Origin: Octopus bimaculoides
Taxonomy: Eukaryota
Length of the DNA: 64,000 nucleotides
Direction of reading: 5' to 3'
Assembly (NCBI RefSeq): GCF_001194135.2
Contig: NC_068981.1
Location: 94,466,283-94,530,282, forward strand
Shown here one piece after another: positions 1,200-43,300 of this stretch. How positions within the stretch are numbered: position 1 is the first letter of the stretch; every line of letters starts with the position of its first letter. The translations under genes and the position numbers were made by a program. The notes under the pieces were generated by a model. It searched no databases. It was not told where the DNA came from and saw nothing but the letters and a program-made list of their open reading frames with translations.

Positions 1200-1339
1200 C
1201 ATTGTCTGTGGATTTCTAATAAAAATCTGCAGCCATGCAAATAATGCATCAGTAGACTTTTTAGAAAATCTTGCTGTTCTAAGCATTTTGGAAAACTCAG
1301 GTGAGCTAACATAATCCATCAAGTAAATTTCTTTTTTCC
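1200..1339 (-). CDS. ABCA1-like: ABCA exon ([47 protein letters not shown])
   Basis: 140 nt, phase 1>0; last exon located in the window. Confidence 0.85.
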
Positions 1340-4300
1340 CTAAAATGTAACAAAATATATTTTTTAAATCATGCAATTATTAAACTTTTATTTCACATAT
1401 GACAATATCATGCACACAATACAATTTACCAATTTCACAGAGCAACTGCTCTCAGTATTATCTTAATTAAATCAGTATGTATTTCATGCACCATAAAAAA
1501 TATGTTAGCTCTATGTACATATTTTCCACATACACAATACATAACAACTAAACACAACAATATAATACATAACTACATACACAATACATAACTACATACA
1601 CAATACATAACTACTATACACATCTTCACCTTAAAACAGTCCAACATTTTTTGAGAAAGTATCAAAGAAAAAAACCCACAACACATTCAAACAATATTTT
1701 ATGCCACAAAAACTGTACACTCAATGATATACCTAAACTAATAACTTCCTCTTTGATTGTGTGGAGATGAGGTTAGTGTGTGACAATTGCTAATTAGGCA
1801 GTGTTCTAAGATTAAGTATGTCTCAGAGGTGTGATGCAAGTTTGGGTCACCCATTTCTTTAAATGTAACATACCTTTGACTACAGTAAACATGCATAAGT
1901 AGTTGCCCTATGTGGTCCACACATCTCACATTATGCCACTGGTATGTCTTGGTCATTTCAGAAGTATCTTAAGGCAGATTTTATTAATTTCGACATTTGT
2001 GAAGGCACATGGTTTAGTATTTAGGCTATTTGGCTCACGATCATAAAGTCATGAGTTCCCAGCAATGTATTGTATCCTTGAGCAAGACACTTTATTTCAC
2101 ATTGCTCCAGTCCACTTAGCTGGCAAAAATGAGTTGTACCTGTATCACAAAGAGCCAGTTTTGTCACATTCTGTGTCATGCTGAATCTCCTTGAGGACTA
2201 TATTAAGTGTACACGTGTCTGTGGAGTACTCAACCACTTGCATGTTAATTTCATGAGCAGGCTCAACTGGAGCCCTTGTCAAATTAAGTGATCAGATCAA
2301 CTGGAGCCCTTGTCATCATAAGTGACAAGAATGCCAGCTATTTGTTCCAGTGTTTTTCAACCTATTTCTGTTTTTTTTTAATCCTTAAATCCTATATTAT
2401 AATCTGTTGCATTATGATAATTTTTCTTGGATTTGATTCGACGGTGGCTTTCAGTTCATCATTATCCACCTTTGTTTCTGGTCGACTGCGATTTGTGAGG
2501 TCAAAGTGACCGGAACGAAATTTTGCAGACCAATTTGATACTGCCTGCTGTGTAATAACATTAGAATGAAATACTCCATTAATATTCTGAGCTGTCTGTG
2601 ATGCTGTATTTCCAAGAAAGAACTCATATTTCAAAACTGTACGAATTTCCGACTTATCTATCTCTAAACAAAAATAGCAAAAACTATTTATAAATACTTT
2701 ATAAAATGCAAAATGAGTTAGAACAAAGAAATAGACGTGTCAGCTTTCTAATAAAGAATAAAGATTGTCAAAATATAATAATAGCACAAAATGAACAGGT
2801 GTCAAAGTTTGTCATATACCTTACTACAAATTTCCTACTTCACAACCTAATATTAAAACAACATGTCTAATTTGATTACCTTGCATATTATTGATATGTG
2901 ACTCAAAAAACTTGATAACAGCAAATAATATTTGCATATTTTTGGTACTTTCTCCAGGAAATATATCTGTGTTATTGTTAAGATGTTTGAACAATAATAA
3001 TGCCAAATCTGTAACACTGTGAAAAAGAAACAAAAAAAAAAAGCAAAAAAGAAAGAAAAAATGGTTAAGATAAATGTTTTCAGAATGTTCTGTATTTCTT
3101 GAAATTATTTCTTTGTAGTTTTTAGAAGTATACACTGTATTGTATGGTGTAAATAAAATATATGAATGTCCATATTTATGGATATTATATACAAAATATT
3201 ATATTAGCATAGGAATTAACATGTCTAGTTTAAAAAAAAAACAATTCTATCTTTTATCTTTTACTTGTTTCAATCATTGGTTTGTGGCCATGCCTGGGCA
3301 CCACCTTGAAGGGTCTTGATTGAATGAATTGGCCCCAGTACATATTTTTTAAAGCCTGGTTTGTATTCTATTGTACACACACACACACACACACATACAC
3401 ACACATGCACACACACACACACACACCCACAGCCACACACACACACACTGATATATATTGCATTGGTTAGGATTGGCAACATGAAGTACATCCAGCCATA
3501 AATAGATCTGTCTCAACTGATTCAGTCTAACCCATTGCAAGCATAGAAAGTGGGCATTAAACTGATGATGATAATGATGATTTTATACACACACACACAC
3601 ACACACACACACACACACACACACACACACACACACACACACACACACACACACACACACACACACACACACACACACACACACACACACACACGCACAC
3701 ACACACACACACACATGTATATATATATATATATATGCAGGTGTGGCTGAGTGGTAAGAAGCCTGGTTCCCAGCCATGTGGTTCTGAGTTCAATCCCACT
3801 GCATGATACCTTGTTCATTCTTCTTTTCGTGTATTCCAAACACTCTGTTTCACCTTCATACTCTTGCTTGTCTCTCCTACTTATTTTGCTTCTCCTTCTG
3901 TCCATAGCTGCTCTTTTCTAGTCATCTCCTCAGTCATATAACCCAAGGGTAAATGTCCACATTATACAGGGGTGAAGATTCACTAATCTTATGAGGCATA
4001 AGATAGTCCCATGAGGGATAGTACCATTATAAATCCACTCAGGCCACTCCATAAAGCAGTTGGCAAGCAAGCAGAAATTGGGGCTTGAGAAGTCCTTTTA
4101 GTCCTGTAGATGATATGGCAACCTTTCTAGTGCTGGTGCCATGATAAAATGCACTTAGCGCTATGTAAAGAGTCAGATTGAGAGGAATCTTTACTCTCGT
4201 CAAGGACATGACAACCTCTCTTTTACTGGTACCATAATAAAATGTACTTAGTACATATTCTTTTCTACTCTAGGCACAAGGCCCAAAATATTTACATAGT

Positions 4301-40300: not shown

Positions 40301-43300
40301 AAAAAGACAGATGTAGAAACAACAAACAGATGCCTTAGTTTAACACTCAGGAAGGTGTGAAAGTCTTATGTTTCGAGCCTATGCTCTTCAACAGAAAGGA
40401 ACACAAGGAAATAGACAGAGAGAGAATCAAAAATGCCGGACTTCTTTCAGTTTACATCTACCAAATCCACTAACAAGATGTTTTTTGTATATAATATACA
40501 TGTTATTATAATGGATGAAGGGATGATTATTGAATGGTTATTATTTTGATATTATGATATTTTTTAAATAATTTTTCTATCTTTATATAATAAGTATTTC
40601 ATATTAATTCATTTGGTACTTATTGTTGGTTGAGATATATATATCTAATTATTGTTCTACTTACGATCTGACGAGTAGCTATATTTTTGAATAGAATTTA
40701 TTTTCGATAATTTCAATTGATTTTAATCGATTTAAATTTCTTTTCTATTTGAAAATTAGTTATGAAACACGTGTAATCTTTTTATTATATTTATCTTATG
40801 ATANNNNNNNNNNNNNNNNNNNNNNNNNNNNNNNNNNNNNNNNNNNNNNNNNNNNNNNNNNNNNNNNNNNNNNNNNNNNNNNNNNNNNNNNNNNNNNNNN
40901 NNNNNNNNNNNNNNNNNNNNNNNNNNNNNNNNNNNNNNNNNNNNNNNNNNNNNNNNNNNNNNNNNNNNNNNNNNNNNNNNNNNNNNNNNNNNNNNNNNNN
41001 NNNNNNNNNNNNNNNNNNNNNNNNNNNNNNNNNNNNNNNNNNNNNNNNNNNNNNNNNNNNNNNNNNNNATATATATATATATATATATATATATATATAT
41101 ATACATATATATATATATATGTATGTGTGTGTGTGTGTGTGTGTGTATGTATGTATGTATATTTATTCATGTGCGCATATGTGTGTGTTGTGTTGTGTGT
41201 GTGCGTGTGTGTGCATGTGTGCGTGTGTGTTTGTGTGTGTGTATAGATAATTGCATATGTAAAAAATCCACAAAATATTTCATAAATTAATTTACTCAGA
41301 ATATCTTCAATATCATCTCCTTTGATATTTTGCAAGGCATCTATGATCCTCTCCATATTTTTCAAGGATGACGTTGACTTCCCAGCCGAGAATAGCGGTG
41401 CCAATTTGCTAGCCATTTTCTCTACCCTGTATTTAAATAAAATTAATAAAATAAATATATAAACATATAAATAAATAACTGAATAAAAAGAAAGTATAAT
41501 TTCTTAAGGAATGTCAAAATCTTTTATAGGTATATAGCAAGCTAGGTAGAATTGGCAGTTAATTTATTAAGGAATTTAATGAACAAGTGAATGTTCAGTT
41601 TAGATCATTCAACAAAACACTTTCTTCATCTTATACTTGTTTCAGTCATTAATTACACTGTGGCCATGCTGGAGTACAACCTTGAAGAATTTTAGTTGAA
41701 CAAATCAACCATAGAACTCATTCTCGCATTCTGTTTTGCCAAATCAGTAAGTCATGGGGTTGTAAACACATCAACACCAGCTGTCAAGCAGTGGTGGAGG
41801 ACAAACACAAACACGCACACACACACACACACACACACACACACACACACACACACACACACACACACACACACACACACACACATACATACAACAAGCT
41901 TCTTTCAGTTTCCATCTATCAAATCCACTTACAAGACTATGGTTGACCTGAGGCTATAGTTGAAAACACTGGCCCAAGATGTTATACAGTGGGACTGAAC
42001 CCAGGACCAAGTGGTTAGGAAGCAAACCTCTTACCACACAGCCACTCCAGTGAACAGTTTGTGAACACTTATATTCTTTTAATTGTTTCAGTCATTTGAT
42101 TGTGGCCATGCTGGAACACCACCTTAAAGAGTTTAGTTGAAGAAATAATCAACCCCAGGACTTATTCTTTGTAAGCCTAGTACTTATTCTATCAGTTTCT
42201 TTTGTCAAACTGCTAAGTTAAAGGGACATAAACATACCAACATCAGTTGTCAAGCCTATAAAAAAATGCTTATCAGAAGTGGGATTCAAGTCCAGGCACA
42301 CATTCGTGGACCAGATTACTCATTGTTCTAGTTAAGGATATTATCTTTGAGTTTGGTGCCTTAGACCACTCAGTCATCCTGTTGATAATCTAATTATCAT
42401 TATAATTATAATTATAATAATTATAATATATATTATAATAATCATTATAATTGCAGAAATTGTTGTAGAATTTTGAAAAGGAGCCAAAATTTGGAAAACT
42501 AGTTCAAAGATGCAAAAACTAAAAGTACTAGTTAAGACTGGAGATTATCAAAAGTTATCTTGCTCCATATGATATGTGGGGCATTTGTTTAGAATTTGCT
42601 GGAAGTTTCTCCCAACTAAAAATTTGCAACATATTAGCAAACATTTAGACATAGCTCACAATTCCAATTCTTTGACAACAATAATAACAAGCTGAAGGAA
42701 TGATTAAGTGGTTGCTTGACCTGCTAGAAAAAACAGTAACACACCTTCAAATCTCACTGTACCAACTTAGACAAAGGAAAGATAGATTGGATAATGAATT
42801 CTAAACATAGTCTGAAAAAAGGTGAGATGGTCATGGCTGGAACACCTCTGATCATGTAGGTATACTATATAGAGAGTTGCCTGGGATCAAAAATGTGGGA
42901 AGCATTCCTAAAATTTTGAGATGTTTTAGGAGAAGCAGTAACAAATGTCTTACATTATTGTAATTCTAGTATATCATTACTATAATCTAATAAGCTGACC
43001 TGCCAACTTTTGTTATTCTAAATTGAAGGAGACAGATGTAATAATACTTTGAGCACACCCTCCTAAACACTGTTTGTCACAATTCCATCCTGTAACCCAC
43101 AAATTGTCAGACATAGGTACCCAAGCAATCCATAACCCTCCCTGCATTTGGGATTTTGCTCCCTATGACATTTGGTTGTTCTGCAGACTGAAAGAGAATC
43201 TTGGGGGACAGTCATTTTGAAGATCAATGAAATTGTGACAAGGGTTCTGGATACCTTCACTTTGAAGGACTTCCATGGGGGCCTTCACAAAGTCAGAGGA

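Follow-up and report, generated by a model that had tools for sequence, protein, structure and literature searches.

ABCA12 is the glucosylceramide transporter of lamellar granules, which it loads with lipid, and its loss underlies harlequin and lamellar ichthyosis; variants of ABCA13 have been linked to psychiatric disorders. In mammalian ABCA13 a 4.8-kb exon reportedly covers much of the first extracellular domain (ECD1), to judge from the title of a 2002 paper by Prades. ABCA13 is the largest ABC protein, with an ECD1 of more than 3500 amino acids (aa), and its N-terminal region, reported in 2021 to be without homology or conserved domains, is needed for vesicular localisation (PMC7948424). 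The extracellular domains of ABCA12 and ABCA13 are abnormally large and, according to a 2026 review, unexplored (PMC13161189). The apical lid of ECD1, to which residues 138-271 belong in ABCA4, is too flexible to have been resolved by cryo-electron microscopy (bioRxiv 10.64898/2026.06.25.734683); exon 3 of the ABCA4 gene ends at c.302, and exon 6 covers c.571-768, that is, 198 nucleotides (nt) of phase 0>0, the phases of an exon being written here as start>end (PMC4283973, PMC12583354). Here we describe a 64,000-nt stretch of the Octopus bimaculoides genome (assembly GCF_001194135.2, contig NC_068981.1, positions 94,466,283 to 94,530,282), hereafter the window. It very probably contains the 5' part of a large-ECD1 ABCA lipid transporter whose ECD1 is made of tandem units of ~220 residues, each encoded by four exons. 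Annotators would label such a gene ABCA12 or ABCA12-like.

The gene occupies the minus strand, running from exon 1 to at least exon 24, down past position 1200 (positions are those of the window), and leaving the window at its low end with ECD1 unfinished. When exons 2 and 3 and the exon that follows them, A1, were compared by phmmer with PDB sequences, they matched ABCA1 (E=3.1e-15), ABCA7 (1.8e-12) and ABCA4 (4.7e-10) over the segment leading from the first transmembrane helix (TM1) into ECD1. These matches bear out the original prediction, made by a model from the bare sequence, that the locus encodes an ABCA transporter. The hallmark of the family is present, as TM1 directly precedes a very large ECD1 that opens with an xAMPSAGxxPxxQ...CNxNNxC motif. 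Inside the window ECD1 amounts to at least ~1150 aa, as against ~600 aa in ABCA1 and ABCA4. Both halves made of a transmembrane and a nucleotide-binding domain, as well as the R domain, would fall outside the window sequence; a relative from the snail Bulinus truncatus that was found through exon 3 carries PF12698 twice, PF00005 twice and PF23321, and matches ABCA1 with E=2.4e-290.

Exons were sought with our own dynamic-programming gene finder, a crude tool which combines generic splice weights, a composition-based codon score and phase consistency and which was blind to the exons of the original prediction. Its best chain lay on the minus strand, scoring 67 against 22 for the plus strand with generic parameters and 200.8 against 41.5 after self-training. 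This chain already held runs of 2>1, 1>0, (0>0) and 0>2 exons starting at 34325, 26641, 20731 and 14733; the remaining exons were added by targeted searches. AG and GT bound all 23 exons, with good pyrimidine tracts in most, and the 19 exons from C1 to B6 splice into 1030 codons without a single stop. The predicted order is TM1, the conserved start of ECD1 and then the tandem array. In each proposed cassette, an A exon (2>1, ~110-150 nt) would be followed by a B exon (1>0, ~95-140 nt), a C exon (0>0, ~180-215 nt) and a D exon (0>2, ~165-235 nt).

The splice chain and phase cycle put forward in the original prediction were thus recovered by the gene finder and by the open frame of 1030 codons, and also by an orthologue with the same phases, GAB1599092.1 of Argonauta hians (see below). 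At all six predicted cassette starts (41426, 34325, 26641, 20731, 14733 and 3016) an AG acceptor precedes a 2>1 exon. The lengths given for the 0>0 exons, 198, 213, 183 and 195 nt, were exact, and each of these exons carries a cysteine pair (spaced by 24, 31, 24 and 27 residues, respectively). The count of about six rounds stood in part: six starts are there, but B1 is absent from the assembly, cassette 3 is without a C exon, and cassette 6 is represented in the window by A and B only.

The arithmetic of the reading frame defines the unit. Lengths of the A, B and D exons leave a remainder of 2 on division by 3 and those of the C exons a remainder of 0, and no exon in the array leaves 1; by our own arithmetic, the chance of finding none such among 19 consecutive exons is (2/3)^19, or ~5e-4. 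Coding lengths of the cassettes are 660 (taking the Argonauta length for B1), 660, 495 (no C), 600 and 660 nt, all divisible by 3. The frame is thus moved by 2 in A, B and D alike and left unchanged by C. In-frame duplication or deletion is therefore open to the entire unit only, with or without C, and this constraint makes the cassette the unit of gain and loss. The cysteines follow the same period. All eight in the 994 aa of the array lie in the four 0>0 exons (263 aa), two per exon, for which the chance is (263/994)^8, or ~2e-5, again by our own arithmetic. They occupy positions 14-18 and 40-50 of these exons, and an N-x-S/T sequon lies within four residues after every second cysteine. The same confinement to 0>0 exons holds for 8 of 8 cysteines in Argonauta and 8 of 8 in Bulinus. 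We infer that the paired cysteines form disulfides.

Exon 3 by itself, used as the query of an exhaustive HMMER search, retrieved 15 proteins. The best match was GAB1599092.1, a partial hypothetical protein of 1115 aa from the octopod Argonauta hians; another was the Bulinus relative mentioned above, a 2737-aa protein annotated as 'ABC sub-A member 12'. When the Argonauta protein was mapped exactly onto its locus, L001, its exon phases proved identical to those of the window and its exon lengths near-identical: 66, 94 and 127 nt for exons 1-3; 131, 131, 198 and 200 nt for cassette 1; 149, 131, 216 and 167 nt for cassette 2; and then 140, 125 and 215 nt, 131, 89, 186 and 194 nt, and 107, 140, 186 and 222 nt. 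Colinear tblastn matches were obtained for the window exons from exon 2 to D4, including B4 with its weak intrinsic signals, and for B6; B3 was the exception, having no tblastn match in the Argonauta locus. Cassette 3 is without a 0>0 exon in both animals. Argonauta lacks cassette 5 (A5 to D5, 660 nt of coding sequence within 4663-14733 of the window), and its intron at this point (41595-42836 of L001) measures only 1241 nt. Therefore, one whole cassette was gained or lost between the two octopods.

Identity between the Octopus and Argonauta exons falls steeply along the gene, from 89% in C1 and 87% in exon 2 to 49-63% in A1, D1 and cassette 2 and to 31-55% in the distal cassettes (31-50% in cassettes 3 and 4). 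In L001, annotation seems to have divided a single gene into the model of the partial 1115-aa protein and the neighbouring one, which begins at 53666 and encodes 4510 aa. Our gene finder extends the cycle across the boundary between the two models, with D6' at 46014-46234, A7 at 47480-47631, B7 at 48234-48364, C7 at 53804-54010 (with cysteines) and D7 at 55341-55537. The full octopod protein may thus exceed 5700 aa, the size of ABCA13.

The cycle recurs far outside the cephalopods. Exact exon maps of annotated models gave four cassettes each in the planorbid snails Bulinus and Biomphalaria, ~10 in the sea slug Elysia chlorotica and ~9 in the moth Mythimna loreyi, in which a single 2>0 exon (214-253 nt) often takes the place of A and B. 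ABCA12 of the striped bass Morone saxatilis (4487 aa) has at least six, broken up by large exons. Throughout these mapped relatives the cysteine pair is always in the 0>0 exon, and the gastropod unit measures 648-690 nt. The arrays end alike, too: in gastropods and the moth they are followed by 0>1 and 1>1 exons and then a 140-nt 1>0 exon, and in Morone by a related tail (0>0, 0>1, 140 nt). We take this common tail to parallel ABCA4 exons 7-9. As the cycle occurs in genes annotated ABCA12 or ABCA12-like of gastropods, a moth and a teleost, the cassette is not a cephalopod invention; it is an old feature of large-ECD1 ABCA genes, common to protostomes and a vertebrate.

Some peculiarities of these relatives deserve mention. 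After cassette 1, Bulinus exons 8-9 and Biomphalaria exons 7-8 form an odd pair of 148 nt (2>0) and 140-143 nt (0>2) without cysteines, perhaps a degenerate cassette in which the C exon was lost and one intron moved. Some cassettes seem to have lost introns: besides the fused A and B exons of the moth, Elysia has a 916-nt 2>0 exon, and Morone has a 2>2 exon of 948 nt as well as a cysteine pair within a 0>2 exon of 200 nt. Such loss within cassettes may show how the giant exons of ABCA13 arose. Residues 765-1674 of the Morone protein are a block that the exon mapping could not resolve. Finally, a Biomphalaria glabrata 'ABCA1' of 2054 aa, whose gene shares a 66.7-Mb contig with that of the ABCA12-like protein, clusters with the large-ECD1 gastropod proteins at 100% bootstrap and not with ABCA1/4. 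It may represent a fragment, or else a paralogue with the wrong label.

The finding that cassettes of 660, 495, 600 and 660 nt are all multiples of 3 would equally suit units of alternative splicing, in which case the cassettes would mainly serve to make ECD1 length isoforms and the full array would not occur in one protein. Many isoforms are indeed predicted in relatives, such as X12-X21 of human ABCA13 and X6 and X9 of sea bass abca12. In contrast, the cassettes follow one another without omission in the annotated models from Argonauta, both snails, Elysia, the moth and Morone, and the cassette missing in Argonauta is absent from the genome rather than skipped. We therefore regard isoform production as an unlikely main role of the cassettes, and even this role would be compatible with their origin by duplication.

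Evidence that the cassettes descend from one another had to be sought at the profile level. Comparison of the window DNA with itself revealed no similarity between cassettes and no exon overlapping a DNA-level repeat, which agrees with the original prediction that the copies have diverged past easy recognition in DNA. Pairwise phmmer comparisons between cassettes gave at most 5 bits, near background, and when the window's A, B and D exons were each tested with profiles of the leave-one-out type, none was recovered. Across species, however, the C exons rose above background: a profile built from Bulinus C exons alone scored C1 at 19.5, C5 at 11.4 and C4 at 4.8 bits, against a maximum of 4.5 among 200 shuffled decoys. 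A profile of the entire cassette, for which sequences of Elysia, Bulinus, Morone and the moth were the sole training set, scored the window product at 31.5 bits (decoy maximum 7.5) with four domains in register, among them C2 at 14.0 bits. With a B-only profile from the same non-cephalopod training set, B2 reached 22.3 bits (decoy maximum 10.6). The C exons and B2 are thus the members of the array whose similarity exceeds that of decoys. The serial duplication proposed in the original prediction is accordingly upheld for the C exons, for one B exon and by a unit length of ~650-660 nt, but similarity among the A and among the D exons is undetectable. The homology of these two classes rests on position, size and phase, because no profile recovers A or D.

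The C exons also tie the array to vertebrate proteins of ordinary size. C1 aligns without gaps to ABCA4 residues 198-261, its best PDB match, which contain LKDIAC-x24-C, and the combined C-profile matches frog ABCA4 at residue 203. This alignment, together with the published coordinates of the 198-nt, 0>0 exon 6, confirms the proposal that cassette 1 equals ABCA4 exons 4-6.

Several observations weigh against an ECD1 built of serially duplicated four-exon units. The exon chain is a genomic prediction in Octopus, as is the Argonauta model, and neither D5 nor cassette 5 as a whole has an orthologue to confirm it. The A and D classes show no significant similarity, be it inside one species or across several. 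Within the window, the two best pairwise matches are out of register and involve neighbouring exons, D1-A2 (z=4.4) and B3-D3 (z=5.4). An AlphaFold2 model of the Argonauta fragment had a mean predicted local distance difference test (pLDDT) score of 40.6 and was unusable; the alignment for structure prediction was restricted to well-aligned rows, since MAFFT misplaced short window exons against the Argonauta protein. In a neighbour-joining tree of the transporter core (1144 columns, with no window sequence in it), the gastropod relatives join ABCA12/13 at only 27% bootstrap. Lastly, the C-profile did not match human, shrew or bird ABCA13. A scan of the spliced product against Pfam, for its part, gave no family match at E<=1.

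The out-of-register similarities may reflect an older, smaller repeat unit or local conversion. On the former reading, the true repeat would be a helical unit of ~40-50 residues, about one per A, B or D exon, in an armadillo- or HEAT-like solenoid, and the four-exon period would be secondary. A secondary structure predicted to be all helical is in keeping with this, as are weak matches to designed armadillo proteins at the D4/A5 junction (16168-16200 plus 14680-14733, against GGNEQIQAVIDAGALPALVQLLSS) and in B2-C2 (33754-33884 plus 30926-31138); the E-values overstate the significance of these matches, since a single stretch of 28 residues aligns with each repeat in the designed targets. A solenoid of this kind nevertheless appears improbable to us, as an iterative profile seeded with D1 and A2 recruited no further copies in the array, no ARM or HEAT repeat came up in the Pfam scan, and the cysteine pair recurs once per four exons in a unit whose length of 650-660 nt is kept across phyla.

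The assembly itself has to be considered, too. Nine runs of N interrupt the window. Six of these lie within the range of the array, all in introns, so that no exon overlaps a gap and no frame is read across one; the shortest distances are 152 nt (end of A4 at 20622, gap at 20470) and 228 nt (end of A1 at 41296, gap at 41068). Simple sequence, such as (CA)n or (TA)n, borders most gaps. The phases at the end of A1 (1) and at the start of C1 (0) call for a 1>0 exon between them. No candidate for B1 was found in the assembled part of 41295-37216, and the Argonauta B1 peptide (131 nt, NGLSLRDIFKDPDKMQKTFVEELHIFDQHAAKALFDSKIKIKE) had no tblastn match in the window. Because the Argonauta orthologue has B1 and the assembled sequence lacks it, B1 must sit in one of the three gaps between A1 and C1. 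The six gaps, the missing B1 and the lack of an orthologue for cassette 5 and D5 might suggest that part of the array is a mis-joined or duplicated piece of scaffold near runs of N, or consists of pseudo-exons. This is very unlikely, as no exon overlaps a DNA-level repeat within the window, order and orientation match Argonauta on both sides of each gap except that at 8241-8380, and frame, splice sites, cysteine pair and sequon are all preserved in cassette 5.

An origin of the phase period and the cysteine pairs by chance or convergence, within an unrelated ECD1 insertion and without serial duplication, to which the near-background similarity between cassettes and the unrecoverable A and D classes might point, is strongly disfavoured by the recurrence of the same phase order, exon sizes and unit length 4 to ~10 times in five other genera of three phyla, by C exons that cross-validate between species and against ABCA4, and by the confinement of cysteines to 0>0 exons in every species examined.

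Exons of the ABCA gene in the window, in order of transcription, with the interval that should contain B1.
Feature	Position	Strand	Length (nt)	Phase	Remarks
Exon 1	52911..52976	-	66	0>0	start codon; tblastn match to Argonauta exon 1, 95% identity
Exon 2	47340..47433	-	94	0>1	transmembrane helix 1; PDB match to ABCA1/ABCA7/ABCA4; Argonauta 87% identical
Exon 3	43453..43579	-	127	1>2	AMPSAG...CNLNNQC, start of ECD1; PDB match
A1	41296..41426	-	131	2>1	weak donor CTGA|gtaaat; aligns to ABCA1 ~105-138; Argonauta 131 nt
B1-containing interval	37216..41295	-			holds gaps 40804-41068, 39206-39771 and 38395-38475
C1	37018..37215	-	198	0>0	LKEIAC-x24-C, then NSS; Argonauta 89% identical
D1	35619..35818	-	200	0>2	weak donor AAAG|gttgaa; Argonauta 200 nt
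A2	34177..34325	-	149	2>1	Argonauta match
B2	33754..33884	-	131	1>0	Argonauta match; B-profile match
C2	30926..31138	-	213	0>0	C-x31-C, then NFT; Argonauta match; cassette-profile match
D2	29320..29486	-	167	0>2	Argonauta 167 nt
A3	26502..26641	-	140	2>1	Argonauta 140 nt
B3	23919..24040	-	122	1>0	no C exon after it; Argonauta 125 nt, likewise no C3
D3	21988..22220	-	233	0>2	Argonauta match
A4	20622..20731	-	110	2>1	Argonauta match
B4	19224..19318	-	95	1>0	intrinsic signals weak; Argonauta orthologue E=4e-5
C4	18005..18187	-	183	0>0	C-x24-C, then NLT; Argonauta and profile matches
D4	16168..16379	-	212	0>2	Argonauta match
A5	14591..14733	-	143	2>1	cassette 5, without Argonauta counterpart
B5	12469..12581	-	113	1>0	gene finder and splice sites
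C5	10117..10311	-	195	0>0	C-x27-C, then NWT; Bulinus C-profile 11.4 bits
D5	4663..4871	-	209	0>2	best 0>2 candidate between C5 and A6
A6	2880..3016	-	137	2>1	gene finder and splice sites
B6	1200..1339	-	140	1>0	Argonauta 140 nt, 52% identical

The surrounding sequence is AT-rich (~34% G+C), with dense microsatellites and interspersed repeats. The introns carry mariner-like transposase fragments and an element resembling a short interspersed nuclear element (SINE), with up to 12-13 copies in the window; such elements lie, for example, at 2395-2739, 5771-6855, 10989-11880, 28050-28700, 13932-14365, 22983-23384, 27045-27526, 37337-37696, 38476-39161, 41623-42255 and 49400-49650. A candidate exon at 2663-2470 was dropped as mariner-like transposase. 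Four others from early passes of the gene finder (38842-38764, 36976-36901, 10805-10579 and 52191-52081) were dropped as transposon or low-complexity open reading frames.

As for what the serially duplicated four-exon units might do, the first corresponds to ABCA4 exons 4-6 and the array to a serial multiplication of the lid segment; as ABCA4 exons 5-6 encode most of the lid, it is the lid that the array multiplies. Each C exon would encode a disulfide-stapled, N-glycosylated helical hairpin, and the array as a whole might form an all-helical extension of variable length atop the tunnel of the extracellular domains. AlphaFold2 predicts the product to be all helical, at unusably low confidence. 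Its many sequons agree with a position in the lumen or outside the cell. A conserved first C exon, divergent distal cassettes and a variable number of them fit a scaffold that is modular, tolerates changes in length and sits on top of a constrained first lid. To judge by ABCA12 and ABCA13, such a scaffold may act in a secretory or endocytic compartment, either holding lipid and handing it over or taking part in sorting and partner binding.

A wider generalisation is possible, and we offer it tentatively: the whole ABCA12/13-type ECD1 across Bilateria, including human ABCA12 and the N-terminus of ABCA13, may be an array of one ancient lid-derived module of ~220 residues, in 4 to 10 or more copies whose number is still changing between octopod genera. 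Full-text literature searches turned up no account of exon cassettes or internal repeats for ECD1s of the ABCA12/13 type, and the original prediction likewise knew of none. The gene is an ordinary member of a known family, and the architecture appears to be an unreported property of that family. If true, an array of lid repeats, each with a conserved cysteine pair and glycosylation site, would give a domain parsing to thousands of uncharacterised ECD1 residues, would allow truncations to be designed rationally and variants to be read by their position within a module, and would be a clear case of a multi-exon, frame-constrained duplication unit kept from insects and molluscs to fish. It would also offer annotators a way to spot and mend split models such as that of the Argonauta gene.

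In conclusion, the locus may be compared with several known systems. With ABCA4 and ABCA1 it shares TM1, the AMPSAG...CNxNNxC start of ECD1, the phases 2>.., ..>0 and 0>0 and the 198-nt exon that is exon 6 in ABCA4. In contrast, ABCA1 and ABCA4 carry the lid unit (ABCA4 exons 4-6, residues ~101-256) once, whereas the window carries it at least six times, and the window unit is closed by a 0>2 exon, unlike that of ABCA4, which is presumably followed by 0>0 and 0>1 exons. ABCA12, as represented by the 4487-aa Morone protein and Bulinus KAH9502477.1, resembles the Octopus gene in its enlarged ECD1, in the cassette itself and in exons 1-3 of 66, 94 and ~130 nt. The two differ in copy number (4 in planorbid snails, at least 6 each in Morone and Octopus) and in the fused or giant exons of Morone, and the similarity between Octopus and fish cassettes is seen with profiles only. 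ABCA13 likewise has a very large ECD1, and the octopod gene is probably of similar size. Outside the ABC proteins, the two-exon kringle IV-2 (KIV-2) repeat of LPA provides an example of a multi-exon, frame-keeping block that serves as a unit of tandem duplication and varies in copy number. KIV-2 copies, however, are near-identical and vary in number within a species, whereas the Octopus cassettes are ancient, diverged at the DNA level and variable in number between genera and phyla.

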